A DNA stretch of 63,203 bases, filler included, from Choristocarpus tenellus KU-1152 (Eukaryota > Protista > Phaeophyceae): assembly GCA_964200185.2 (NCBI GenBank). It is 10 parts of 10 records of this genome, joined end to end, with 100 filler letters (N's around TTAATTAATTAA, not from the genome) between each part and the next. Parts side by side here need not be neighbours in the genome. Positions count along the whole stretch, not along the records: positions 43,016 to 53,195 come from CAXNAD020003099.1; 9 more parts are not named here. One strand, 5' to 3'. Each line of letters opens with the position of its first letter. Within the stretch, counting starts at the first letter, position 1. Below are positions 1,956 to 49,224 of this stretch, one piece after another. The notes below the pieces were generated by a model, which ran no database searches, was not told the DNA's origin, and saw only the letters and a program-made list of their open reading frames with translations. Both the position numbers and the translations under genes were made by a program.

Positions 1956-4200
1956 CTACTTTGCCTTCTTTCCCCTGACTCGACCTTTATTTCTTTGCTG
2001 ATCTCTGCCCATGGTACCGGTGGGTACCTCTCCTTTTGTACCAGTCTCCCGTTCGTGAGAGATGAAGAAGTGCTCCGCCAGCTCAATCAAGGAAAGGTCA
2101 TCCGACATGAGCCCTCCCTCCCTATCCAACAACCCCCCATCCAAGTCAGTCATAGTCACCAAGGCCCCACCATATTCCAAAGTCGATAGAGATTGGGGGC
2201 ACACAGGTTGGGCTGGCTCACGGTGGAGTTCTTGGAGGCTGCATGCCTGTCGACGCTGTGTTTGCCATGCCCCCTCATCTGCACTCTCGGCCAAACATGC
2301 TGTCTGCAAGATTTTCCAGTGGTTAGGGAAAAATAACCACGCTTTTGATACCTGGCCATCTTCTGATGGCAAGCACACTCCTCCTCCACCACCCACTGTT
2401 GTCACCTCAGCCCCAACCCCCATTGCTTCTGCCCTGCTGTTGTCAAATTTGATCTCTTTACCCCCAGTACTAACAGTAGTATCCCCTGTGCTCCCCCGCC
2501 TTTGCCCCCTTTCTCCTTCAACACCTCCCAGCACTGTTGCTTCCTTCTGACCTGCAGTGGACCTTCCCTGGTTCCCATAACGATATAACGACCCCAACAA
2601 GGCGAGCTTGAGCCATGAATAGAACAAGCGGCTCACAACCCTATCAGACTGTAGTACCAGCACGAAGCTGTTTGTGTCTGGAGGTACCCATGACCCAAGA
2701 GCTACAGCCACCGTGTCTCTTCGCCCACCCTCTCCATATGCCTGAGCCCGAAGGGGCTTGTGAACCTTCTTGGGCCCATGCTCCCACTGGAAATCTTCTG
2801 CCACCTTAGTCCCCTCTCCCACTGCATCCATGGTAACCACTGTCAAGCCCACCTCATCCCCCAGGTACTCTGCCAGTTCTAGACTCTTTAGCAAAGCTGA
2901 GAGCTGTACTACGCTGTGCCCACCAGTCCCTAATTCCCCACGTCCCTGCAACCGTTCCCCTACACTTCGCTCATCATGTACCACCAGGATCATCACCCGG
3001 GGTGTGTGCCAAAACACAAACGACTCTGGGGCTAGGCTCCGGAGCCAGGCTGCTGCCCCAGCTCCCCCTGCAGGTGGAAGTTGGATGTGGGGTACCTTAT
3101 GGTGGTAAAGGCTGGATGCTGCAAGAGCCTTACCGACCACATCATGTGAAACCGCCTTCTTAACAGTCACCACAGCAAGTGGGCGCAAGGTCTCAACTAC
3201 CCCCACAAGACCTGCCACGAGTTCCCCCACCAGCTCAGGAGTATTGAGTACCTCAGTCTGACTGCCCACCACCTTCCTCCCTTCACAGTCCCCTCCCCCC
3301 TGATCACCGATACGGAAGTGCCTGCCCACCATAAGGTTCCATGCACCCCCAAGGAGGTTGGCGTCACATAGGTCTGCTGCAGTTGCCATCACAGCAGCAT
3401 TAGTCATATCATCTCCTCTCACACTGTGCACACCCAGGGCTCTTGCAACCTCGGGGCACCCAACATCCTCATCTCTCCCAGTCAGTACAAGTCGGGCAGG
3501 GCGGTGGTCACTGGAAGCTCGGAATGTCTCCAGGGCAAGGAATAGGGGCCCCAGAGTCACCGCATCAGCCATGGAGTCCACCAAGAAGACCACTGGGGCC
3601 GGACGCCAAGCGTACTGGGGGGTGAGGAAGTATTCCCCTCCACGCTTGAGGAGACGATGCCATAGGCTGTCCCGTACCAGTACCATGCTATGGGTAGTGG
3701 TCCCACCAGCGCCCTTGTGGGGATGTGGTGCATTTTGAGGGGTAACACATAAAAAGGTTGTTGGTTGGGGTTTGGCCACACATCTGATGTATATGCAATC
3801 ATCTGGAGTGTGTTGGAGTGCGAGGGATTCTGGGGGTGGCGGTGGCGGTGGTGGTGCTCTTCAACATCACATGAAAGGGAAGGAAAAGGGTTGAACGGAT
3901 AAGTAGTTTGTTCATGCTTCACAAATTGTGTCTACAAAATCTCATGCAAATTTAGGACCCACCATACACAGGCAGTAGTGGTTTACACAATCCCATAGAG
4001 GCTTTTAACCCTTTCCTCATCTTTTCTCAGACTCAATTGAGGCACAAATGTGCCTTCCATCTGCCATTCACTCTCACCTGGTCCTGCATTTTCCAGTGTA
4101 CATCAGTATTGCCCCAGGTTTCACTGTCCCTCATGTCCATGGGCATCACAAACGATCGAATACCAGCATACTTCCTAAGTGAGTATGCAAGCATGTAGTC
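1956..4200 (-). CDS. Glycosyltransferase of the plant At5g60700-like (GT2-annotated) family, 3' part; exons 4200-4078 and 3713-1956
   Basis: Exon 4200-4078 (aag|GAC...CAG|gtgaga) reads DYMLAYSLRKYAGIRSFVMPMDMRDSETWG and splices in phase 0 to aag|GGC at 3713. The terminal exon contains VRDSLW, LLKSLELAEYLGDE, FQWEHGPK and SRLFYSWLKLALL. These match recalled plant family motifs (LSYQLQKY..SFVLP..ETWG; VRDDQW; LLKSLSNAYYLGDE; FDWPHGPK; SPYYYLWIKYALL). The 5' end is beyond the gap. Confidence 0.8.
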
Positions 4201-4265
4201 CTTTGGAAGGAGAGGCAAGGGGGGGGGGGGGGGGCAGGGGGGGGGGCGGGAAACTTGAATTTGGT

Positions 4266-4365
4266 NNNNNNNNNNNNNNNNNNNNNNNNNNNNNNNNNNN
4301 NNNNNNNNNTTAATTAATTAANNNNNNNNNNNNNNNNNNNNNNNNNNNNNNNNNNNNNNNNNNNN
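4266..4365. other. Artificial contig linker (44N-TTAATTAATTAA-44N); also at 7349-7448, 23571-23670, 27794-27893, 34737-34836, 39073-39172, 42916-43015, 53196-53295, 57990-58089
   Basis: Nine identical 100-bp spacers. TTAATTAATTAA gives stops in all six frames, a standard concatenation linker. Confidence 0.98.
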
Positions 4366-4393
4366 GAGGGGGGTGACCCAAATGAGGTAAACA

Positions 4394-4428
<35 letters not shown>

Positions 4429-4440
4429 ATTGCAGCTCAC

Positions 4441-5869
4441 CTTGTCAGGTTTTATCCCCTTGGAAGGCATCTCATCAAGAAGAGCCCTTGCAGAAGAAGA
4501 AAAAACGTGTTGTGTGGGTTAGTGTAAGGGTTAGGACAAACTCTAGGGACAACAGGGTTATGTTTCGACTGACTTTTAATCAAAGCGACGTGTGCAATAC
4601 AAGTAGCAGAGTTTTGAAATGTCTGAGAGACAGAACCTGCTACACCAAAGACACTACAGTATCACTATCATTTATACTTCAAAAACTCTACCCCCTAACT
4701 CATCTTCCTAGAAGAGTTCATCAAAGCAACTTAATCCCATACCTGGATCTTAGCACATGAATTCCAAACCCCCCTCTTCCTGTACTCAAAACTTTAAATA
4801 AAAACACTAAATCTACCTAACTAATCCTTATATGACCTGCTGTAACTAATAACCCTCATTCTCGGGAGACATCCATTCTATGCCAGAGATGTGTGCTTCT
4901 TCTGCCAATACAATATATCGCTGCCTACAAATTAAAATTATTAATATAAAAAAAGATCAACCTGGCTTTCAACCCAACAAATTAACACCCTCTCGGTACT
5001 CATATCCATCCACAACAGTGCAACCCTAACCCTAACCCTAACCCTAACCCTAACCCTAACCCTAACACTGCCAATTGTGTCAAAAGAGACAGACACAGTA
5101 GTACACCAACACACTCGTAGAACATCCTCTCCTCTTAACAATACTAAAAAAGGTCGCCAGGGTAGTGCCAACAGTTAACCCACAACAGAGTGCTTCAAAG
5201 TACCTCAAGTAGTTCATCAGAACTCATTCACATCACAACGGGCCAATCAGATGCCTTTTTGCTCCATGACCAAACCCCCAGACACTCTCATTTCGTGTTT
5301 TCAACACCACTGCACTTTAGTTGGCAGTTCTTCATGGCTACGCAAGAAAGCATTCAAGATACACCCCACAAATCATTACCTACTATACCCAGATAACCCG
5401 ACTTAAAATGAACACTCTCCAACCTCCAACTGTACAGCCAGCAGAAATCAGTCATTTTCCAGATTTAGGTCACTAGAGTAGAGTCTGTACCCAAAAAAAG
5501 ACCCTACTTGAACAGCTCGAACCAGTCCCTCCCCTCCCCTCCCCTCCCCCCCCCCACCCCCCCAAAAAAGTCAAGTAAATGACGTACTTGGCTTCTTTGG
5601 GTCGCCCTGCCCTTGACAGTGCAGACATGGCTGAGTTGTACGATACCACATCTGGGGTTACGCCATGAGAGGCCTCCATACTCCTCAGCAGCGACAAGGC
5701 TCCATCGGGGTCTCCCCCCCTGCCGCAGGCGTCTATACCAGCATTGATTGCAACTCGGTTCGGCGTTACGCCTTCCTGCTCCATGTCCGACAGGAGCTTC
5801 AGGGCCGACAAAGAGTCTCCCCCCCTTCCGCAGGCGGTGATCGCTGAAGCGTAGCACTGGAGATTGGGA
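4441..5869 (-). CDS. Pentatricopeptide repeat (PPR) protein, internal exons 5869-5588 and 4486-4441
   Basis: PNLQCYASAITACGRGG..ALKLLSDMEQEGVTPNRVAINAGIDACGRGG..GVTPDVVSYNSAMSALSRAGRPKEAK|ALLDEMPSKGIKPDK gives about three 35-aa PPR motifs. GT-AG sites are in compatible phase (2/2). Confidence 0.9.
5024..5065. repeat. Interstitial telomeric array (CCCTAA)7
   Basis: Seven perfect CCCTAA units inside the PPR intron. Confidence 0.9.
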
Positions 5870-6530
5870 CTTTTGATTTCCAGTTCCGGAGGGGAGGGGA
5901 GGGGAGGGGCACACAGGAACATTCCACATAGGTGTGAACAGGTCCATGGCAGAGAGGGGGGAAGGGCACCAGGCGAGGTGAAAGACACAGGGGAGGTGAA
6001 CCCGTTTGAGGTGTGAGCTATAGGGAGGGATGCAAATAAGACACAAACATGCACTGACCACTTAAATAAGAAAGAAAAAAAAAGGGAGGGGGTGATAGGT
6101 TGGCATCACAGAATAAGGCATGCTCAGTAAGCTATCATTATGACCTAAGTTCAGTTTCTTCATACTTACACCATACCACCTACTAAATCACATAGCACAC
6201 ACTTTATCTACACCCCTTGCAATGGCTACATAACTACAGCCCTACACACTGTATCGTGTTTATCAAAGGGTGGCATCAGAGGTACAACCAACAACAGAGC
6301 ACCTGTTCTCAACAGCAAGAGAGGACTAGGGTCATTCCTATTGTTCCACTGACTAAAAAACCAAATAGAATTAATGTGATGTCCTCCCATCAGTCAACAG
6401 AGAGTGAGTCAGTGGACTCATCCTGCTGGCTTGTCTATCAAATAATCGAGACTACAACGAGAGCATTTAATGGCCATGGAGTCAGTCTATCCAGATTCTT
6501 GTCTAAGTGAGCTTGCCCTGGATAATCAAT

Positions 6531-6789
6531 GAGTCAAAGCATCTTAAAGGGCAGGGCTGTGTCCATTTAGGGGTCAAACTCCATTGTTGCGATTTTGATG
6601 TAATCTTGGCTATCATATTTGTTATGAAGTGTCAATATCCTTGTTCCAGACACACCTTTTCATAACGTGTACATTTTACCTACTCCAAAACATTTTGGAG
6701 TAGGAAAATGTCTTAAAAAACCCTATGGGAAGCCAAGCCTCAAATGGACAAACAGGGCAAAAATCGTACCGTCTAAGATACTTTCACCC
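6531..6789. mobile_element. MITE family A (TIR ~GRSTSAAAGTATCTKRGGGG), full copy with AAT TSD
   Basis: Ends gagtcaaagcatcttaaagggg / ccgtctaagatactttcaccc, flanked by aat on both sides. The internal sequence recurs at ~25145-25358, 27700-27793 (inverted) and ~30845-31106. Confidence 0.8.
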
Positions 6790-7154
6790 AATATGGGGTG
6801 TATCACAACTGGCATGGCTTATTGACACAGTACATACCTTCAGCAAAAGGACCCAATCACAAAACATGATTGACTAATTGATGTTGTCACATTTTCCATC
6901 TTTGAAATGTGCCAGGCATGACCATACTCCATTCCTCTCGTCATAATAACGCTCTCTCTCTCTCTCTATCTCTCATTAAATTGCGATACTTTTTCCAATA
7001 CAAAAATAATATGAAAAGTTGAATTCTATACTTCATCTAATTCTTTAAAAAATGTTTCAAAATTTCCATTCATTTCTTCAGCTAATCCCATCATACCACA
7101 AACCAGTAGCAGTAACGACCCATTCAGACCGAACTGTCTCCAAAGTGTGAGAAC

Positions 7155-7348
7155 AGCCAATCAGCTGTCAAGAGAGTTGTGCATGGGGAACTCTATCAAG
7201 CCAATCAGCTGTCAAGAGAGGTGTGCATGGGGAACTCTATCAAGCCAATCAGCTGTCAAGAGAGGTGTGCATGGGGAACTCTATCAAGCCAATCAGCTGT
7301 CAAGAGAGGTGTGCATGGGGAACTCTATCAAGCCAATCAGCTGTCAAG
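7155..7348. repeat. 44-bp minisatellite, at least 4.4 near-perfect copies, truncated by the gap
   Basis: Unit agccaatcagctgtcaagagaggtgtgcatggggaactctatca repeated head-to-tail with no spacers. Confidence 0.95.
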
Positions 7349-7448
7349 NNNNNNNNNNNNNNNNNNNNNNNNNNNNNNNNNNNNNNNNNNNNTTAATTAA
7401 TTAANNNNNNNNNNNNNNNNNNNNNNNNNNNNNNNNNNNNNNNNNNNN

Positions 7449-7516
7449 AAAAATCGCGATATGAAAAAATTGACCCCAAATGGACAGCCGCCACCCCCTC
7501 CCAGATACTTTGAGCC
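7449..7516. mobile_element. MITE family A end (truncated by gap)
   Basis: aaatggacagccgccaccccctcccagatactttgagcc, the same end as 25363-25406 and 47597-47634. Confidence 0.75.
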
Positions 7517-9814
7517 TTGTGTATAGGGCAAGCTCATACAATATGCAGCTATGGTCACGATAAAGCGCCAACAATAGACAAGCTAGATAATGGAACAGCT
7601 TTGGTGATTCCTTGGGGGCATGCACATATTTGTGCGAAAAACAAGACACTTCTCTCCCTCCAGTTGATCCAACAGTCAGTTCAACAATGTGTTACATGGC
7701 ATGACCCCTGGTTACATAGACTTCAACAACAGATTTTCAGTGTTGTGAGAGGAGGATGATTATTTTCGGTAAGCTAGCAAATCAAACTTCTGTTTCCCGT
7801 CTTGCCATCTGGAATGTGGCCAACCACAAGATCAACTCATATGAACAAGCCCCACATGATGTGGTTCACAAGCATGCTCTCCCTTTTCAACTGTTTTCGC
7901 CGAGCAGTGCTCCTTCCGAGATATCTTACTCCACCAATCCCCGACCTTTTGCTGTCCTCAACAACAATCTACGTCAGAATTCCGTCCCAATGCAGGCAGC
8001 ATCCGGGTAGGTGTACGATGCTGTCAAACACGCACGACATTATGACCCTGGCACAGTTTTCCAATAACCCATGCACAAGCAATGCATGGAAAAAACTCGA
8101 CTAGAACCATAGTTTCCAGGACTATTCAAGGACAGAGTTAGATGGCACAAGTAGATATGACATGGAATTATTGTTTACAGCTATACTCATGCTCTCTTTT
8201 TGCGAGAAGCTGAGGCGGACTAATCTGAGGGTCGACCCAAGGCACACACGCGATGCGGCTTTCTTACTTGAACCTGGCAAAGCGAAGAAACAACGGGATC
8301 AAGCTTGCAAAACAACTCCTCCATTTTGTTATTCCCACTCTTCACTACCTTCTAATAAGGCGAGTTAATTCACAGAGTCACACCATTTGTTTCCTCTCCA
8401 CAAACCTAACGAAGCATATGGTTCGACCCAGTAATTTTCTATATAAACAAGATTTCTTATAGAGTTATTTCCCCCTTTGAAGCCTGATCAAGCACATCAA
8501 TATTCGATCCTAGAAGGCATTGCTAGATCATCCCTTTCCAGATTCCAAAACAACTGAAGGGCAGATATGACAAGATGATGACCAAGCATCAGGAGTTTCC
8601 GTCTGTCTTTCGGTATCTCTGTTGCCGATGAATATTTGCACCGCGACCATAATCCTTTGAAGTTAAGTCATCCCAGTATCCAATCTATCTGCTCTGTTCG
8701 CCCTGTAGAGCTGTGGTCCCTCTTCAGTCTCTACCTCTTGTAATACAACACCAAGGACAAAAGGAAACTGAGGAGTAACGGGTGAGCGAACATTTCCCCG
8801 TTAAAAAAACAAAAAAATAGGTACGAACGTGAAATTGGGTGGAGGGGCAAAGTTTGCGGTTGTGCAAGGACTCCGAGCCACCTTAACAGTTCAGCAGCAG
8901 CGGAGCAGGAGTGAACCTGTGCCACCTGGCAGCTAGGTTCTACATCAGGTGAGAAAAGTGAAGCCCTAAGTGGACTGATGGTGTTGTTGTCGACGGACTT
9001 TGTGAAGAGGGAAGAGGAGATTAAAGAGATGGAGAGGGTTCGATTGGACACGATCATGGATGGTCTTCTGTAGGTTGGGTGATGGATCCTGGTTTAATTT
9101 TTCTCGGTGATTGCGATCGCAGACTAGGACATACAGGTGGAAACTGACTTGTTCAGCCTATCGGACATGACAAGGTGTCTTTCTTTTACTCTGCCTTAAC
9201 CTGAAGTGGTCTCGCACACGGACCTTTGCCTCCTCACAACTAACTCCCTGTGAGTTATTGCGATCTGGTAATGACCGGGAAGTTGACCCAGGAACCTTAG
9301 TGAATTTTTTTGAGTTGTCTTTATGTAGGTCGAGATTGCGGTGCATAATATCCCTTGATGGCCATGTTCATTGGCCACAACATCAACACTTCACTCGGGG
9401 ATGGCCCTGGGTTACTCTCCCTCCCATGTATTGCGATGAGAAGTGTTGTTGCTTTACATTTCTTCAAAGTTATCCTTCACTGAGCAATTAATCAGGACGC
9501 GCATGAGTGAAAGGAAACCGTATAAACTTTGACAACAGTAGAGGTCGAGGGAAGGTTGGGAGTGGTGCATTTCTACAGGTTGCTAACCCTATAAGTTCTG
9601 CGTGAGATGGTGCCGTAGTGCCTTCACTATTCCGCATCGTCACACGCAATGGAGGTTGCTCTGAGGATGTTCGACCTTGTTCTCGTTGTTGAGGCACTGA
9701 ACCTTGATTGAGCTTGTAGATCGATTCAAGGTAGTGAGATGGAAACGTGGAGTTGAGCCCTATTGCCTAGCCGACCTTGTTCTCACCTCTCCTTTCCATC
9801 CCTGACCAGTTAAT

Positions 9815-12800
9815 ATGGGTAAGGGAAAGCCGGCAGGAATCCGCGCTGGGCGCAAGCTGCGCGTACATCGCCGCAACCAGCGGTGGGCGAGCAAGGTTAG
9901 TGTTCCCAGAGGTCCTAGAATGCAGAAAAGTAGTCTTCTAGCTATTGCCAGGGATTTCTCACTGGCTTGATCACAACATTCGATCATTTCACCTTCTATT
10001 CCAATAACATATCAATGTGTTCTTTGTTTTGGCTTGGTGTTGATAGGGCTGTCGTAGATCTAATGTGTGAGTTATTGGATTTGTCAAGTCCCAGAGTTTA
10101 TCGAGCATTGGGATTATTTAGGATATTTTTGTGACAGGCATTGCCTATCAAGGTTCTCCAGCCTCTTTTTCCTTTATCATTACATTTTGTGAAGCATGCT
10201 GCAACATCCTGCCTTTCTGAGGAGATTGTGTATTGTCTTTTGCTTGGAGAAAGTGGAAAGGGCTAGACACTCCCATGCAGGGATAGAAACAACAGGAGGG
10301 GGAAGTTTGTTGAGCCTACCTGGAGTCAGAGTGGGTTGGTTTAAAAAAGGGTGTTCCAGGCTACAGCTTACCCTTGCAATACGTCAATTCTTATTTCCTA
10401 AGAATAGTGGCATTCTGATTAGTCCCTCTTCCGCCTGTTTTGCTTACCCTCATATTGTGAGGACTTCCCTTGTGTTTATTGTGATTGAATGCAGTGGAAA
10501 CACTGAGAGGACAAAAGTTCCCCTTGAGCCCTCCCTCTTTTTGTTTGGATCGTGCATAAACCTAAAGTGGTCAAACTTGCTGCTCACGATTCCAGATGTT
10601 TGACATTCTGGAATAAGATAATTAGCTTGGGCTCCATATCTCTAAGAGTCAATTTTTTATGTTGTGATTTTTGAGTGATTTGGTTGCGTACGTCTAATGG
10701 ATAATAAAAATGCACTTTTCCTGGTTTTGGTTCAAATGGACACCCTGGTGTAGACCCCCCCCCTCCCCCCAAAAAATACTTTGGGTCTGTTCACCCCTTC
10801 GCCTGATTGTGCTGAGACACTCTTGATTAACCTGTGTTTTTAATTGTGCATTAATTGATACTTACTGGGAGAGAGTTTTTTTGTGCATTGCCTGTATATT
10901 ACTGAGGTGTCATTATTTGTATTGTTATCTGATTGAACTAAAGTGAAATCAAGTCTTGAGTTGCCAATAGGGGAGTGTCTTCTTATATGAGTTTGATGAT
11001 GTTGCTTTGTTCCAGGAGGTAGTTGATCCCACTTTGCTCAGATATCAAAATAAGCAATTCAAGAAGTGTCCTCATCAATCACGTAAAATGTTGATGTTCT
11101 TGGCACTGCTGGTTGTTGTGCTCCCTTCCAAATGTTGATTTTTATCGCTGTTCCTTATCACTTGAGACATTTGCCACCAACATGTCTGGGTGTCAACAAT
11201 TTCAGACAAGCTTGCGGTGCTAAATAGATAGCTGTGGAACCTTGACCATGACCTCTTGTCTTTGCGATTTCATTGATTTACTTTCTATGTTGTGAAAAAC
11301 AGGACTACAACAAGTCCCACTCCGTGACAGCGATGAAGGCTAACCCCCTCGGTGGGTCCTCCATGGCTAAGGGCATTGTACTCGAGAAAATGTGAGGTTG
11401 GCACATGACTTTTTTTTTCGGGTTATTAAGGACTGAGAGGCGGGTAATAACTCACTTTGATATTTAATCTTCCCAGGAATGTACTCTGCCGCGTAAAGCC
11501 TTTGCTGCATTTGGTTTATTGCAGTTACTGGGGTATGGTGTTGTCCACACAATTAAAAAGGTGTTTCGAAAGGACAGCAGTGCAATTTGTGCATATCCTA
11601 GTACAGATGGCTCTATGCGAATGTTTCATAATGTTTTATGCCAGTAGATGCATATTGTAGTCCTTGTGCATTCTGTTGCCATGTTACTCATGGTAAGTCA
11701 TGTTGTTTACTAGGTTGGACTGTAACCTGTACTGTGTTTGCAAAATGGTCAGAGGTGTAAAGTGTGGTGAAAGATCAGATTCTGTGTTACTTCTCATTAT
11801 ATGATATCTTCACTGGCATTGCATGTTGACATCTTCAAATTGAAGCAGTTTGAAGCGTGTATTTTTTTTCGGGGGGGTAGCCATGCATTATATTTTTCCA
11901 TTTCACTTCTATGCCTCTCCTACGCACCCCTTTGGAAAAACATCTTCATATACTAAATCTTAGGTATTTGTTTCGAGAGGTATGGTTGTTTGATTGATGT
12001 TTTTGTTTTGTTCCTTACAAGTTGGCAGACTTAATCTGGTTATATATATATTTTGTCGATATTCAGATTTTGGACTGATACGCACTTGGCTCCTATACCA
12101 TTGAGATTAGTAGATTATTGGCAGTGCTACATTGGATTGTAGTTGATTACTGATCATGCCAAACCTCACTTTGCAGTGGGATGGGTTCTGCCATGGGTGA
12201 GGCAGGGAGGAGTTCCGTTTTGTTTTTTATTTTGTCATATTCTGTGAGTTTGAGACTAATTGGAGAGACCCTTATGAATGAAAGTATTCTACTAATATGT
12301 TTCTTGTTAAATAAATAGTCATACGCACTTTATGATGTCCCCGTTTGTGGTATACTTTTGGTTGTTGTAAGTGTATTCAAGGCAAGGAAAATGTACAAAC
12401 TCCAAGAGAAGGTTACGGCATTTTTTTAATGCCTGGACTTGATGTTACTCTGTTTTTACATGTAATCAGAAAGGCACAACAGAAGATGTGGATCGCGCTG
12501 GTTGTAAAGAGTAGTCCTTTTTCACTCAAGTACAAGACAAACTATCTAGATTATACGAAGTATGGGAACGACAGTTGCCTGTGCGTGCACTAGGTATGTA
12601 CCATACGTTAATGGTGATAAGAGTCTGTGGTTCCCTTTCTTGCTTGTCTGGAGAAACTCTTAAGGGTAACTGATTACTTTCATGTCTGGAACAATGGTAT
12701 CAATAGTGAAAGTTTTCTTGTTATCTGTTTGTGACTCTTGATGCTCTGACTTGAAAAGAAGATTCAAAGTGGAACCGTTTAATTGGAGGAGCTTGCTAGA

Positions 12801-43586: not shown

Positions 43587-46263
43587 AGCGCTTTATCGGG
43601 ACAAGCCTCACACACGACCACACCTCCATCGCCAGGATCACAATCAGCAGCACCAGGTCCCAAGTCACCAGCTATAAAAAAGGCACACATTTCATACACG
43701 TAAGCATGAATCACAACAGGTCATCCACCCAAATACCACAAGGAAACACAGGAGTAGTACACCAGGTGGAGAGATATGAGGGGGTGAGTGCTCGTGTGGA
43801 CATGTGTGTCTGTATGACTGTGTATGTGTCTGTGTAATAGTCTGTGCTTGCCTATCAGTCTTGTCTGCATGTATCTATAGCAAAATTCTTCAACACAGTG
43901 CTCCGTTCTATTTCCAGCACTTCCATTCATGGGAGTTCAACGTAAGCACGATTACCCCTATCACACAAAGCAATAAAAAACACACCCTACATGATGTACC
44001 TTCAACATGGAAAAAAAAGGGACACTTAAAGCAATCTTCTAGTGGGGGCTGCTGACGCATATATAGCCTGAAATACAAGATTACGTTGTTTTGTATATTT
44101 CACACCAAGAGTCACCAACAGCAAGCCATCCCTAACCTTAATGTTTACGCAAAATCTAACCATTACATTCGAACAAGATATTTGACAACACACACAATCA
44201 TCTCTATTCTGAAAAAGGGTGTACCTCATTTTGGTCAACCAGTACCTGTGGACTTTAAAGACGGAGGCTAGAAAGGCAAAGAGTAGGGGACACACAACTC
44301 TTGATTATAATCCTTACCATAAGTTGCCATAACCCCAAAGCGCCCATGCCAACCCAAACACCCCAAACCTAACCCTAATCCCATGGAGCAAGACCACAAC
44401 AACCACAACAACCACAACAAATTGTTTAAGATATTACCCTACCCCCCATGAACTCAACCCCAATATCAAACCCTAACCCTAAGTATCACCATGGGGTTGA
44501 CACAAGTACTGAAACTACTTGGTTGACACAAGTACTGAAACTACTTCAAAGTACTTGTTGGTACAAGGAACAAGCAAATATATGTTACACGTATTTTCAA
44601 ATAAACAATGAATCAGCGGTAGGAACGGGGTTTTGATTTAGTCAGCAGTGCAACTATTGCAACAAAAGAAAATGTGGACAACAGAAAACACTTGGACAGT
44701 ATAAGTTCAACTGCTTGTACCACTAGGGGTAAGCTCTAATCACACCATACACATCACTACTCTGACCGCGAATAATTTCCAACAGCGGAAATCGCGAAAT
44801 TTCCGGAAATAGTTGACATCCCAACCCCAAAAAACAGTCCAATTTAAACCTCTGAAATCCACACCTGGTCTCATTAAATGATTGCCATGCATGCTTTTAA
44901 TTTTACTGTCTGATGATGCCCTACCGATCCAATCAAATTACTGTTTTTAACACCTGGTTCAACACCACTGTGCTCGCAATGTTGTGTTCTCTCTTTAAAA
45001 ACATTACCTCAACAATCCGGATGTGTTTGATTCCATCCTCTTCCACAAGTTCCCAAAATAGGAAGGCAAAGACCAGAGCAGGGAAAAGAGCTTGAGCCGG
45101 AGAGTTCCGCCTGCTCCACATGAATCCATGATGCAAGATCTCTGTACAGCACTGAAGGACCCATGCCAAGACAAAGAGCACATTGGTAACGTCTGATGTC
45201 CAGGGGAATGGGGTGGGAGCAGAAGGGAGAGCTGAAGTCGGGAGACGAGTTCGGGTTCTTTGAACATTGAAAGTGCTAAGGGCAATAGTGGACTCTCAGG
45301 GACTACTGTAGGGGGTGTCATACGATCTGAGCACACTCGCACACATTGCACCACGAACATGTAGTTGGACTAATTGTAGCGCAACAATAAATCTAAGGGT
45401 TGCAATTCAAAAGATCAGTTTCTCAGCGGATTACTTTGTTATTGGACACCACACGTTTGTTGGTGCAATTATGGTGTGAACCAAATACATGGTTGATCTT
45501 CAAAATCAACCCACAAATAAGTACGGCTTCGCGCACGTGGTCAAGACTCTGCGAAATAATGCACTAGATATGATACTCTACACCGCGCAACATAATCGAG
45601 AGGTGGTATGTCACTTAGCATGCTTTGTACCAGGATGTACGAAGATGCACAGTGATACGACTACACACTTGATCAAATAGCAAAAATAAAACCAAATAAA
45701 TTTCCCATATTTCCCGCCATCGCGAAGCTAGTAACGTTATAAAGAGTAAAGTCACGCATGCTCTTCGTGGCACCCTTACATTTGTAAGGGTCGTCAGCAT
45801 GCCCGTCCACAAGGTCGTAGGATCCGTCACCGAGATGATATGATATTTGCAGCGTGTACAATATAAGCTTGAAGAAATGTACGCTTGTACCCTTCTTCAA
45901 ACTGAGCTCGTGGGTACTCTTGTTGCCTCCCGTGTACTCATCCGCCTCTATACCATTTGACCTGTCTCCCAAGAGTGGTACATCTGCACCATCCCCCTTG
46001 AACTCCTCATCTCCCTCTTTTGTCTTGCCACCCATAAAGCCATTCAAGGATACGTCAGCAGCGAGGAGTCCACTTCCATCGCTTCCACTCCCATTATTAC
46101 CCTTACGGGATCTGGCGTAAGTGATAAGGTAGGCGAGGGCAAGGAAGGACGAGTACAACAAGGGCAACACTGCACCCAACGTAGCTACAGAGCAGGGGCC
46201 ACTAAAACTCCAAAACTTGGACCACGAAAGATCTTCATCACATAGGCCCTCGAGAAAACCCAT
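43587..46263 (-). CDS. Multi-pass membrane protein, probably the N-terminal TMD0 region of an ABC transporter (ABCC/MRP or ABCB6/HMT1-like); exons 46263-45780, 45192-45008, 43671-43587
   Basis: MGFLEGLCDEDLSWSKFWSFSGPCSVATLGAVLPLLY has the C..W..PC pattern of TMD0. It continues in phase as ..DDPYKY|VTNVLFVLAWVLQ..QALFPALVFAFLFWELV..IVE|LVTWDLVLLIVILAMEVW, about five hydrophobic segments. No nucleotide-binding domain is in the window, so the family call is inferred. Confidence 0.65.
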
Positions 46264-46506
46264 TGTGCGTGTGTCTTCAGGTGCCTTCCGAAGTACCTCC
46301 AACTATCTCGCAGCACGAGTGAACTTACTGCTGGAGTGGAGTAAGCATTGTGTATATTTTCCTTGAATCTATAGAGTACCGTCATGTAGGGTTCAAATTA
46401 ACACCTCCGGAGGTAGTATCAGCTATTGGATGGTGTACAAAAAAGGCAACCACCTACCTCTTGTGGATGAGTTGTGGGTGACAAGAGGAAACCCACTCAG
46501 TTTAAC
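46264..46506. promoter_or_regulatory. Probable bidirectional promoter
   Basis: Only 243 nt separate the divergent ATGs at 46263 (-) and 46507 (+), within a CpG-rich zone. Confidence 0.6.
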
Positions 46507-47984
46507 ATGAATACACCTTCATCTGTCCATTCTCCAGGATCAAGCGTCGGAAGCGGGCCCGGGCACAAGCGAAGCGAAACCTCTGAAGGTGAACAAAGAC
46601 AAACGAAAGTCAATATCCACTTACAGTGTTGGTATCACAAAGTAGAGTTTGTGTCGTTGGTAGTGGGATGCCAAAACACTTTAGTGCTTATTGCAATGTT
46701 CGACCCTATCCATGGCGTCTCGTTTGTTATTGCGTTTAAAAGATATTGATGAGAAAAGGTGATCACAAGATGTTACGGCATGCCCTCAGCAGTTCTCGCA
46801 CCATTCACCCGTTCGGGTTTTTTCTATCTCTGTTTCTACTGTTAGGACGATCTACCAAGCGCGGGGTGGATGACTTAATACGGTGGGCCTTGGTCGCAAA
46901 TAAAGTTACAGGGGAAGAACGGCTTGCAGAGGAGGCAAAGAAGGCAAGACACTCTACACCCCTTTCGAAACAGCGTACCACTAGACACCCCATGTCCTTA
47001 CCATACCTCCCATTTGTCAAAATGGTCGAAAAATTTGTTCCCTATTAGCCCTGGTGGATGGGTAGAGTAAGATTTCCCCCTCGTATGTGTGGTCAGGTGA
47101 CTCTTTTAGATCAAGATCGTCCTGGAGGGGAGAATTGACTTTGTGTGATCCGCGACAGATTGAAGTGCGTCGTGGTGGAATCCACCTGTCCTGGAAGACT
47201 ACGTACATGGTAGAAACGCCCGTGGTATATAAGCTTTATTAACGAGGTTGAGGGTCATTATCTTGTGATATTTTAACGTTTTTCGATGTTTCGCTTCAGA
47301 GAGGTGGATTTATGTTACTTGTTGGTTTAACACTTCGATTTTGGTCTTGGAATCTAGAGACCAAGAAATACTCACAGAAAGACTGTTTGAAGGGTGCATG
47401 TGCATGTGCAAGTGGACGCCCCACATATATATATGGAAGCATGATTTAAATTTGACTGAAAGTATCTTGAGGGGGGAGGAGTGTCTACACCTGGGTGTCC
47501 ATTTGGGTCTTGACTGGGAGAAGTGTACGTACACTGTCCATTCGACGCATGCAACCATAGCACCCAAAAATCGCAATATGGAAAAATGGGCCCCGAATGG
47601 ACAGCTGCCACCACCCTCCCAGATACTCTGAGCCTTTACTCGAGGTTGAGCAATCAATGCACTGCTTCTTCTATGTAGGGTATGTGCATTAATGTACTTT
47701 TTATCAACATCGCATCAAAGATTATGTAACTCTAAATTCATCACAGGACACTGTGTGAAGCATCATCTCAACAAATGCCTGTCCCAAACAAGAAAGAGAC
47801 AATTGCATGCTCTACCTGATTGGCTTTGTGAAACCTAGAAATAAACCATCTTCAATATCCCCAGGTGTTGGCAGCTGACATGATGACCAGCTTGCGCAGG
47901 CTTACAGATGACCTCAATGACGATGAGTGGATGTATGACCCCCCCAATCTTGGTGATGGAGGAAGATGGAAGAACCGCCGGTAA
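46507..47984 (+). CDS. 99-aa SAMBA/APC16-like small protein (candidate APC/C subunit or regulator); exons 46507-46588, 46846-46943, 47865-47984
   Basis: 82+98+120 nt = 300 nt: MNTPSSVHSPGSSVGSGPGHKRSETSEG|RSTKRGVDDLIRWALVANKVTGEERLAEEAKK|VLAADMMTSLRRLTDDLNDDEWMYDPPNLGDGGRWKNRR*. Intron 1 is GT-AG and intron 2 is GC-AG. The C-terminal helix and DxW[M/R][Y/F] motif resemble SAMBA and APC16 as recalled. Confidence 0.75.
47454..47634. mobile_element. MITE family A full copy with TTT TSD, in intron 2 of the SAMBA-like gene
   Basis: gactgaaagtatcttgagggggg ... ctcccagatactctgagcc, flanked by ttt/ttt. Confidence 0.8.
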
Positions 47985-49224
47985 TATTACATTAAAACTC
48001 AAAAAGCACCTCCGTGTATTATAGAGTGGGCTTCACTGGCCTGTGGTGACAGTTCTACCAGTCCAACCTTAAATGAAGTAATGGAGGTACTGGAATAGGA
48101 GGTTAGAAAAGAACTGTATATTGAGGGTATGTTTGTAAAGACGTACACCGCAGTATCATCCTCCTGGAGTTGCCGCAGTATGTCAGCCAATCAGTTGACA
48201 CCAATAGATACTATTTTCCGACCTGAAATGGAGAAGTGTATGGTTGGCATGATTGGGTAGTATGATAAGTACCCTCTTCTGAACTGGACTGTTGTCAGTG
48301 GCACTGGCTCTGAATGGCAAAGATCACGTGTAAAATATGGTGTGTTCCTGTTTATTCCTACTGTATGGTTGTTGTCCCTTTGATCTTTCAAAATGCCCAC
48401 TTGCAATTTCCAATGCTGTAACCATCCCATGAGCCCCATGTTGTCCTGCTGTGAGCTCTGGTAGGCTGTGTGGTTATTTTCTGTATATATATATATATAG
48501 GACTACTGATAATGAAGTGCCCTGAAATATGTTTATGTACAAATTGGATGTGCAGCGATAAATGCAAACTGACTGGAGAGTATAGTTTGCACCAGTGGAA
48601 TAAGATGCTTTTGGAACTGTCAATATTTTGGCATGGTGTGGAACAGACTACTAGCATTATAAAAATGACAAAATGAGCAACCTTTTCTAGGAGCCCATCT
48701 TTGCAATTGGTGAAGTACTTCACAGTACAGAAAAATTTCAAGCCTACAAGACTGGGCACAGAATTTACATGCACTTCACACCTCATTCTACTTCAAAGTT
48801 GTAGACTAGTTTCCATCAGGGACTCCAGTGCACTCAATCTCATGCTTGACATAACTGGCAGGCATTCTTAGATTACTTGTGGCTACATTCCACTACCACA
48901 AGTCAACACTTTGACATTGACCATTTTGGGGACTGAAAAGATCAGTCCCCCCAGGAATGCTGTGGGTCAAGAAATAAAAAAAGAAAATAATGTATCTACC
49001 AATTCAACCCCCAAAAATAAGGTTTACCACTTTTTGCCAATAACAAAAATAAAACCTACAGCACAATTATGTGTGTTGGCCTATCCTTGACAAAGCAAAA
49101 CATATGCTGCACTGAGTCAAGAGTGCTGTTCTAGGTGATATCCCTCCTTTCAACACAACAGTACGATGTCTGAATCTCTTACGTATCAAGATATACTCAC
49201 AACATGTACCCCCCCATCCACACC

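Follow-up and report, generated by a model that had tools for sequence, protein, structure and literature searches.

Is SAMBA, an anaphase-promoting complex (APC/C) regulator that is described as plant-specific in papers up to 2025 and is being edited in crops for organ size and fruit quality, confined to plants, and is it related by descent to the metazoan subunit APC16? A short gene of the brown alga Choristocarpus tenellus raises both questions. It lies in a window of 63,203 nucleotides (the whole stretch of DNA that was analyzed, made of parts of ten genome records joined end to end), within the part from record CAXNAD020003099.1. The initial annotation had described it as hidden, with a product of 99 residues that matched SAMBA at either end and APC16 at a D-E-W motif, and had proposed it as a candidate APC/C micro-subunit from a family overlooked in stramenopiles.

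The gene is on the plus strand and consists of three exons. Exon 1 (46458–46588) begins with no fewer than 49 nt of 5′ UTR, as covered by an RNA-like contig, followed by 27 codons and 1 nt of coding sequence from the ATG at 46507. Its product is a Ser/Gly/Pro-rich N-terminus with the first residues MNTPSS. Intron 1 (46589–46845) has GT..AG ends and is in phase 1. Exon 2 (46846–46943) carries a G-V-D-D-L motif and the beginning of a long helix, and its last residues are EEAKK. Intron 2 (46944–47864) is a phase 0 intron with GC..AG ends (AAG/GCAAGA ... CCCAG/G), located directly 5′ of the Val codon of V-L-A-A-D. The coding part of exon 3 (47865–47984) comprises 39 codons and TAA, and it carries the conserved motif V-L-x2-D-h-x3-L-x6-h-x-[DE]-D-x-W-M-[YF]-D-P. 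Translation of each exon gives 82+98+120=300 nt, which is exactly the 99 codons plus stop that had been claimed.

The transcript data confirm this model, and the gene is real and expressed. Run X2 is RNA-like, with a depth of 600–990 over the exons and a depth of 0 in the intergenic gap and in intron 1 (bin 46626–46739). One X2 contig (record 12) covers 46458–46586 and is then spliced to exon 2. This joint (46586>46844) corresponds to GT..AG when the cut is shifted by 2 nt, giving 46588/46846. The second joint, 46941>47863, has a shorter anchor of merely 27 nt and a 3-nt ambiguity, within which the sole known splice class is GC..AG at 46944–47864 (the +2 position). Both junctions predicted from the DNA (46588/46846 and 46943/47865) are thus present in spliced contigs, and the non-canonical GC–AG intron is also found in the GenBank entry CAM9418575.1. 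X2 record 15, a further contig of 1462 nt with a depth of 267, extends without splicing from 47863 to beyond 49000. The transcribed stretch 3′ of the stop codon (47985–49000, plus strand) is either a long 3′ UTR or belongs to another, overlapping transcript. The joint 46111>46458 was ruled out as the link to an upstream exon of the 99-codon gene; its CT..AC ends are those of a minus-strand GT–AG intron only, and a neighbor on the minus strand overlaps the gene head to head.

The word hidden was only partly justified. Exons 2 and 3 had already been annotated in CAM9418575.1 (104 residues, called P0017 here), in which the exon 2–exon 3 join is identical to that of the 99-codon model. The gene range of this entry is 46749–47984, and its start codon at 46749 falls in intron 1, at a place without X2 coverage. 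The 99-codon model corrects the deposited one, and the locus illustrates how GC–AG introns and tiny exons lead to truncation of such genes in annotation. Intron 2 also contains a short repeat of very high copy number (about 47506–47651), where the contig depth in all three runs is 3,700–12,000 compared with approximately 17 alongside, and where many contigs end. The initial annotation had called this repeat a MITE. The identity as a MITE does not follow from the inverted arms, which are weak (47456–47474 and 47614–47632; 19 nt, 74% complementary at seed 6), and no inverted-repeat pair was seen around the repeat at seed 9.

Annotated full-length relatives of the protein are present in at least five brown-algal genera. 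Those from Ectocarpus, Pylaiella, Laminaria, and Ascophyllum are 94–100 residues long, start with MNTP, and are annotated as unknown proteins. The start MNTP..SPGS.VG is kept in these four and in Discosporangium DNA (locus L001, 4683–4775), where each of the three exons has a conserved, collinear counterpart. Exon 2 is 59% identical to its counterpart there (L001 4974–5069). The Discosporangium intron at the intron 2 site has GT..AG ends, unlike the GC..AG ends in C. tenellus. Between the two species, exon 3 shows 16 codons with a synonymous difference and six in which the residue is replaced, and the differences at codon positions 1, 2, and 3 number 3, 2, and 20. The divergence is dominated by third positions, and purifying selection on exon 3 is strong. 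The exon with the L..D.W.[YF] motif is conserved across brown algae. The searches detected the family nowhere outside Phaeophyceae and plants, and no relatives in other stramenopiles; they are weak for short proteins, as they work with a word index and length windows and scale their E values to 5.8 billion sequences. Calling the family stramenopile and overlooked was an overstatement, with relatives in brown algae only and several of them already annotated.

The AlphaFold2 model of one brown-algal relative (P0009, 94 residues) predicts that residues 1–26 are disordered and that residues 27–80 form one helix, with pLDDT values of up to 98. A disordered N-terminus followed by a long C-terminal helix is also the architecture described for human APC16 (110 residues), and a size of around 100 residues with a low-complexity region is shared with SAMBA. 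For the searches, the exons were queried singly, with residues 34–104 of P0017 as a substitute for exons 2 and 3 together and natural full-length brown-algal proteins in place of the complete product. Pfam gave no significant family for any exon or full-length relative, and phmmer against the PDB gave no match for exon 3 alone or P0009. An Atlas feature search with exon 3 returned nothing useful, and the Atlas fold search was uninformative, as expected of a model with just one helix. The homologue search with residues 56–104 of P0017 recovered only P0017 itself, and the metagenome search for related loci with alignment A4 gave 27 pattern matches, none of which was confirmed.

A metagenome locus (L006) supplied the exact sequence of SAMBA_ARATH, which showed that the C-terminal SAMBA peptide given in the initial annotation was nearly right, with K-A in place of K-T. 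BLASTP of P0017 residues 34–104 against SAMBA_ARATH gave an alignment to SAMBA residues 46–77, with 14 of 32 residues identical (44%), 21 of 32 positive, and no gaps (32.7 bits, E 3e-8 for a single comparison). The aligned stretch in P0017 is EEAKKVLAADMM...WMYDPP. In the genome, this SHR2-like segment is split into EEAKK at the end of exon 2 (46929–46943, plus strand) and 47865–47945 in exon 3 (plus strand), the latter also being covered by hhalign, shuffling, and the APC16 profile searches. The hhalign probability was 95.6% (E 1.1e-8, 52 columns) against a SAMBA alignment; SAMBA as a single sequence gave 92.3%. Exon 3 scored 67 against SAMBA, compared with 21.9±4.1 for shuffled versions of SAMBA (z approximately 11), and 0 of 20,000 shuffles reached this score. 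Judged by these comparisons, there is strong support for clear homology of the 99-residue product to plant SAMBA in the C-terminal helix, which corresponds to the SHR2 region. The N-terminal half behaves differently: exon 1 scored 24 against SAMBA residues 1–35, where the shuffle mean was 23.1 and 8,082 of 20,000 shuffles reached the score (p approximately 0.3–0.4), exon 2 alone was at chance level in shuffles, and for the SHR1 region only a weak collinear match of G-V-D-D-L with G-L-D-D-F was seen in the hhalign alignment. The proposed match to SAMBA at both ends is supported for the C-terminal half and not for the N-terminus.

A degenerate DNA pattern of 72 nt, built mainly from residues conserved in brown algae, was scanned against 241 million metagenome records and matched three loci, all of which are plant SAMBA exons. 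The information in this pattern is, by a rough estimate, 44 bits, for which well under one chance match is expected. The scan was not fully blind, as the SAMBA peptide of the initial annotation had been compared with the pattern beforehand and one position was dropped for that reason. The brown-algal homologue over the C-terminal helix indicates that SAMBA is not plant-specific, as the initial annotation had suspected.

The APC16 link is consistent but borderline. With C-terminal family profiles, human APC16 chains ranked 1–3 among 177,635 PDB sequences, and APC16 was the top PDB match in every such search. Its E value was 1.1 with alignment A3, 0.42 with A4, 0.22 with A5 (brown algae alone), and 0.042 with A6, to which SAMBA rows had been added. 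The matched stretch comprises residues 79–100 of the 110 in human APC16 and 64–85 of the 94 in P0009, both approximately ten residues from the C-terminus, and it falls within 47865–47945 of the window. In the same searches, noise matches reached E values of 0.33–0.5 (TAF62) and 0.14 (CdvA), so that APC16 was only approximately 3–10-fold better. The Pfam family ANAPC16 (PF17256) was matched by a single fragment, residues 42–77 of P0013, at 16.4 bits (E 0.013, profile positions 50–75 of 80), where the gathering score is 25 bits. Neither the exons in the window nor the full-length brown-algal proteins matched PF17256, and the gathering score was not reached. COX16 matched four family members in Pfam with E values similar to those of ANAPC16, and ANAPC16 was the sole Pfam-named cluster among the Atlas feature neighbors. 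Searches with SAMBA itself, whether its single sequence or a profile from Brassicaceae, matched neither APC16 in the PDB nor ANAPC16 in Pfam. APC16, which the initial annotation had matched at the D-E-W motif, is the best PDB match of the family profile, but only at an E value of 0.04–1.

We consider it likely (a probability of roughly 0.7) that the locus is the C. tenellus member of a brown-algal family of 94–100 residues that is homologous to SAMBA, and that it encodes a small APC/C accessory protein predicted to bind APC3. In this protein, a Ser/Gly/Pro-rich N-terminus, predicted to be disordered, is followed by a single long helix that ends in the motif L-x2-L-x3-[IL]-x-[ED]-D-x-W-M-[YF]-[DE]-P. 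By analogy with SAMBA, the helix would dock on the TPR subunit APC3/CDC27, and the protein may function as a regulator or a small TPR-accessory component, in a role equivalent to that of animal APC16. Going beyond this locus, we lean towards the view that metazoan APC16 and SAMBA belong with the brown-algal proteins to one ancient family, present before archaeplastids, stramenopiles, and opisthokonts diverged, in which SAMBA would be the missing plant APC16 subunit and not a plant-specific regulator.

Three other explanations have to be weighed. The SAMBA similarity might be a chance match between acidic amphipathic helices, the gene then encoding a small brown-alga-specific protein with an unrelated role. 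The aligned residues are merely 32–52 or so, no Pfam family was assigned, and the N-terminal halves match no better than chance; but the observed score was reached by none of the shuffles, the hhalign probability is high, the pattern scan yielded SAMBA only, and D-x-W-M-[FY] and V-L-x2-D are invariant in both, which makes chance highly improbable. Transfer of the gene from an archaeplastid lineage, by endosymbiosis or horizontally, bears only on where the gene came from and could hold alongside the functional reading. It would explain a family seen in brown algae and plants with no relatives from other stramenopiles, but those searches are badly limited for short proteins, the divergence from SAMBA is deep (44% identity over the 32 best residues, with nothing detectable outside them), and the intron phase differs between plants and brown algae. 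We regard transfer as improbable.

The remaining explanation accepts the SAMBA homology and denies descent in common with APC16, so that the shared D-x-W-x-[FY] would reflect chance or convergence on the APC3 groove. In its favor, the APC16 E values (0.04–1.6) are near those of noise matches, the PF17256 score is under the cut-off, a SAMBA-only profile does not find APC16, and yeast Apc9, of dissimilar sequence, can occupy the APC16 site (PMC11473103). On the other hand, APC16 is the top match of every C-terminal profile and its score rises with SAMBA rows, the overall size, architecture, and motif position are common to both, and SAMBA and APC16 have the same experimentally known partner, APC3. 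Taken together, we find independent origins rather unlikely and prefer the one-family reading.

A brown-algal homologue means that the SAMBA family is either older than land plants or has moved between lineages, and the family can be studied in a second lineage that became multicellular independently. In sequence, the brown-algal proteins are intermediate between SAMBA and APC16, and the human APC16 helix is matched better once SAMBA rows are added to the brown-algal profile; the question of whether SAMBA is the plant APC16 thus becomes directly testable. If it is, samba phenotypes would reflect loss of a core TPR-accessory subunit and, going by human APC16, APC7 incorporation could be affected as well. 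APC16 was concluded in 2011 to be an animal innovation (PMC3195147), which would not hold if the one-family reading is true. We found no literature joining SAMBA with APC16/ANAPC16 in this sense, within an incomplete coverage of the literature.

SAMBA (Arabidopsis At1g32310, 100 residues, with maize and tomato orthologues) is among the closest known proteins. Both proteins have approximately 100 residues and a low-complexity N-terminal half, and they share an ungapped SHR2 of the form [DE]-E-A-x-[KR]-V-L-x2-D-[LIM]-M-T-x-L ... L-x-[DE]-D-x-W-M-[FY]-[DE]-x-P. SAMBA binds APC3b and co-purifies with the APC/C, and SHR2 is required for binding (bioRxiv 10.1101/2021.04.22.440954; PMC11473103). The genes are also alike in having three exons, as in the maize cDNA (bioRxiv 10.1101/2021.04.22.440954) and in Arabidopsis, and possibly in an intron at the Val of V-L. 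The plant intron is in phase 1 and interrupts the Val codon behind its first base (Arabidopsis, L007; a second plant, L005), whereas the brown-algal one is in phase 0 just before that codon, the two sites being 1 nt apart. The proteins differ in host, in the SHR1 region, which has no detectable conservation in the brown-algal protein, and in the tail, which is P-R-S-R-I-x-L-I-S in plants and P-x-[DN]-L-G with a short basic end in brown algae.

Human APC16 (110 residues; PDB ID: 4RG6, 4UI9) resembles the brown-algal protein in size, in the Ser/Gly-rich disordered N-terminus, and in the single C-terminal helix, the latter two being predicted for P0009. In APC16 the helix comprises residues 52–110, with phosphosites 8, 16, and 26 in the disordered N-terminus (PMC5717348), and in animals it sits in the outer grooves of APC3 and APC7 (PMC11473103). 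The ungapped L-x2-L-[LV]-x2-[IL]-x2-D-x-W-x-[FY]-x-P-I-[DE] is common to both. APC16 has Arg after the Trp where the brown-algal family has Met, the upstream portions are unalignable, and APC16 is a stoichiometric APC/C subunit that contacts APC3 and APC7, whereas the brown-algal protein is a candidate for such a place in the complex. Searches of the PDB and Pfam gave no similarity to Apc13/Swm1, Cdc26/Apc12, Apc15/Mnd2, or Apc9. These subunits are likewise small and mostly disordered with short TPR-binding segments, and orthology among the small TPR-accessory subunits of the APC/C is barely visible in sequence (PMC11473103).

The gene occupies 46507–47984 on the plus strand. Exon 1 (46507–46588) comprises 27 codons from the ATG plus one base, and a GT..AG intron (46589–46845) separates it from exon 2 (46846–46943). 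Intron 2 (46944–47864) has a GC donor, whose context is otherwise consensus (AAG/GCAAGA), and an AG acceptor; exon 3 (47865–47984) ends with TAA. The coding total of 300 nt corresponds to 99 codons and a stop, and sequence and per-exon translations bear out this three-exon model of the initial annotation. Three public sequencing runs of one study cover the region, with RNA status on record for none of them. Over 45600–49000, run X1 has an even depth of approximately 17, like genomic DNA, and run X2 reaches a depth of 450–990 over the exons, with no coverage in intron 1 or in the upstream gap. Judged from this depth pattern and its spliced contigs, X2 behaves like a transcriptome. A 258-nt X2 contig (depth 963) joins 46586 to 46844; a 2-nt shift gives the GT..AG intron 46589–46845 and thus the predicted junction 46588/46846. 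The second predicted junction, 46943/47865, fits an X2 joint at 46941>47863 that has a positional ambiguity of 3 nt; it is the only one of the four possible cuts to fall in a known splice class, GC..AG. The shorter side of this joint is only 27 nt, so the evidence for the GC–AG junction is good but not overwhelming. As an observation, the gene as described is confirmed. An X2 contig of 1462 nt runs unspliced from 47863 through exon 3 to beyond 49000 (>1 kb past the stop codon), which points to either an extended 3′ UTR or a second transcript that overlaps.

Intron 2 holds a short element (47506–47651) at which many contigs end. Contig depth there is 3,700–12,000 in all three runs, against approximately 17 in the flanks; the Choristocarpus genome therefore carries this repeat in very high copy number. 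Its inverted arms are weak (19 nt, 74% complementary). Head-to-head with the gene lies an expressed, unannotated ORF of 209 aa on the minus strand (45673–46302), covered by X2 contigs over 45780–46254 at a depth of about 600 and without a match in Pfam. The joint 46111>46458 in one X2 contig has the ends of a minus-strand GT–AG intron (CT..AC), so that the minus-strand gene seems to use an alternative 5′ exon, which lies antisense over exon 1 of its SAMBA-like neighbour.

All queries were single exons or natural database proteins. Exon 3, searched exhaustively with phmmer, yielded seven relatives, named in follow-up searches as brown-algal proteins. Among them is P0017, an 'unnamed protein product [Choristocarpus tenellus]' (CAM9418575.1) encoded at 3734–4969 of CAXNAD020003099.1 (10,180 nt; GCA_964200185.2), which is exactly 46749–47984 of the window. 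This GenBank model already joins exons 2 and 3 over the same GC–AG intron, so to call the gene hidden was an overstatement. The deposited start is an ATG within intron 1, and 33 intron-derived residues replace exon 1. Exon 1 as initially annotated is the better model because X2 coverage is zero over the deposited first 33 codons while the exon 1–exon 2 splice is present, because full-length brown-algal proteins share its MNTP start, and because all three exons lie in order in Discosporangium DNA. The start MNTP.S..(S/P)PGS.(V/L)G, like that of exon 1, is common to the Ectocarpus sp. (94 aa), Pylaiella (94), Laminaria (100) and Ascophyllum (97) proteins. Several deposited models (P0010, P0008 and P0016; Ectocarpus siliculosus CBJ48467.1 and others) are 60-aa truncations that start at an internal Met (MDHW...) without the MNTP exon, which is present in the 94-aa model of Ectocarpus sp. 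CCAP 1310/34.

Choristocarpus tenellus is an early-branching brown alga. At the Discosporangium mesarthrocarpum locus (L001), the three exons lie at 4683–4775, 4974–5069 and 5224–5343, and DNA-level alignment with Choristocarpus is confined to the exons. Over codons 1–30 of exon 3, the two genera differ by synonymous changes alone in 16 codons and by a changed residue in 6; differences by codon position number 3, 2 and 20, and on this comparison the reading frame is under purifying selection. Intron 1 of Discosporangium (L001 4776–4972) needs a GC donor (GAAG/GCCAGT) to hold the reading frame and intron 2 is GT–AG, so the donor classes are reversed relative to Choristocarpus. In GenBank, the Discosporangium gene has only a partial model without exon 1 (P0001, 53 aa). 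In the family alignment, the Ser/Gly/Pro-rich N-terminus varies, the middle part is conserved moderately (G-[VMI]-[DE]-x-W/L, then L-x-E-x-A-K-K) and the C-terminal block strongly, reading V-L-x2-D-[IM]-x2-S-L-R-R-L-x-[DE]-D-[IL]-x-[ED]-D-x-W-M-[YF]-D-P-x-[DN]-L-G. For the Ectocarpus protein with this alignment, AlphaFold2 predicted disorder over residues 1–26, one helix over 27–80, where pLDDT reaches 98, and after it a loose tail.

Homologue searches by word index did not extend as far as SAMBA. A degenerate DNA pattern of 72 nt was built with the invariant or near-invariant residues of brown-algal exon 3 as fixed positions (V-L-x2-D-h-x3-L-x6-h-x-[DE]-D-x-W-M-[FY]), verified to match the window and all brown-algal loci, and run on a metagenome collection. 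All three loci found were plant SAMBA, in a scan that was not fully blind, as the SAMBA peptide of the initial annotation had been compared with the pattern beforehand and one position dropped for it. L006, a cDNA-like contig without introns, has an ORF of 100 residues that is identical throughout to 'Protein SAMBA [Arabidopsis thaliana]' (SAMBA_ARATH); L007 is the genomic locus from Arabidopsis, and L005 is the corresponding exon of another plant. BLASTP, hhalign and shuffle comparisons are independent of the dropped position. BLASTP of the deposited Choristocarpus exon 2–3 product against SAMBA gave 32.7 bits (14/32 identities, 21/32 positives, no gaps; E 3e-8 for this single pair). With hhalign, the brown-algal alignment matched SAMBA alone at 92.3% and an alignment of SAMBA proteins at 95.6% (E 1.1e-8, 52 columns). 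Exon 3 scored 67 against SAMBA, a value reached by none of 20,000 shuffles (21.9 ± 4.1). Exon 2 alone was at chance in the shuffle test, as was exon 1 against the SAMBA N-terminus (8,082/20,000 shuffles reached its score); the match claimed at both ends is thus restricted to the C-terminal (SHR2) end, where homology to SAMBA holds. In Arabidopsis and the second plant, a phase 1 intron splits the Val codon of V-L-K between its first and second bases, and in Choristocarpus and Discosporangium a phase 0 intron lies directly before the same aligned codon. These positions, one nucleotide apart, add a little to the SAMBA link and are suggestive, not decisive.

Some Brassicaceae SAMBA proteins (Eutrema, Arabis and Microthlaspi; P0044, P0049, P0053) read E-E-D-N-W-M-F-D-G-P, which resembles the brown-algal E-D-N-W-M-Y-D-P more closely than Arabidopsis SAMBA does. 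The G-V-D-D-L of Choristocarpus (46863–46877) and Discosporangium, some 15 residues ahead of the SHR2-like block, is collinear with G-L-D-D-F of SAMBA_ARATH (28–32), a pair that lies inside the hhalign alignment and is not significant alone.

Family members were found in Phaeophyceae (Discosporangiales, Ectocarpales, Laminariales, Fucales) and plants. Other stramenopiles gave none in searches that are weak for 40-residue motifs, so that this absence means little; with Phaeophyceae the only stramenopiles represented, the label 'stramenopile APC/C micro-subunit' is for now an over-generalisation. Transfer from an archaeplastid may have given rise to the brown-algal gene. SAMBA continues to be described as plant-specific in papers up to 2025, and a 2011 phylogenomic survey found APC16 in vertebrates only (PMC3195147). 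Literature searches of incomplete coverage returned no paper in which SAMBA and APC16 (or ANAPC16) are mentioned together in this sense.

The proposed resemblance to APC16 was examined by profile searches against all 177,635 distinct PDB sequences. With the brown-algal profile, human APC16 chains ranked 2–3 (E 1.1–1.6 in one search, 0.42–0.61 in another); with its C-terminal part only, human APC16 came first (E 0.22). Adding SAMBA rows to the C-terminal profile raised the score, and three APC16 sequences became the top three (E 0.042, 0.079, 0.24). The ungapped stretch spans residues 79–100 of 110 in human APC16 and 64–85 of 94 in the Ectocarpus protein, at the same position relative to the C-terminus. 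PDB entry 4RG6 is, we take it, the APC3–APC16 crystal structure, reportedly of Yamaguchi et al. in 2015, and the part that binds APC3 would then be its APC16 chain of 43 residues. Pfam ANAPC16 matches one family fragment at E 0.013 and 16.4 bits against a 25-bit cut-off. In a language-model comparison with the Ectocarpus protein, the sole neighbouring cluster to bear a Pfam name is ANAPC16 (rank 12, score 0.83). Several independent tools agree in pointing to APC16, all weakly. However, noise matches in the same profile searches reach E 0.14–0.9 (TAF62, CdvA, Bicaudal-D), Pfam COX16 matches four members as strongly as ANAPC16 matches one, and SAMBA alone as query found neither APC16 nor ANAPC16. 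On sequence statistics alone, the link is borderline.

What lifts it is context: the biology of SAMBA, the architecture of APC16 and the circumstance that, as far as we know, plants have no described APC16. SAMBA has approximately 100 residues, is APC/C-associated by experiment and binds APC3b, with SHR2 held pivotal for binding (bioRxiv 10.1101/2021.04.22.440954). APC16 is a 110-residue subunit with a disordered part and a helix that lies on APC3 and APC7 (PMC5717348, PMC11473103). The initial interpretation as a whole is partly supported: the protein belongs to the known SAMBA family, by homology at its C-terminal end, and brings that family into a new lineage, and the link to APC16 is plausible but borderline. 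The unification of SAMBA with APC16 is credible but unproven. We put the probability of common descent from an APC16-like ancestor at about 0.6. The brown-algal protein would function as an APC3-binding accessory subunit, and that it works like APC16, docking on APC3 through its C-terminal helix, is somewhat more probable than shared ancestry.
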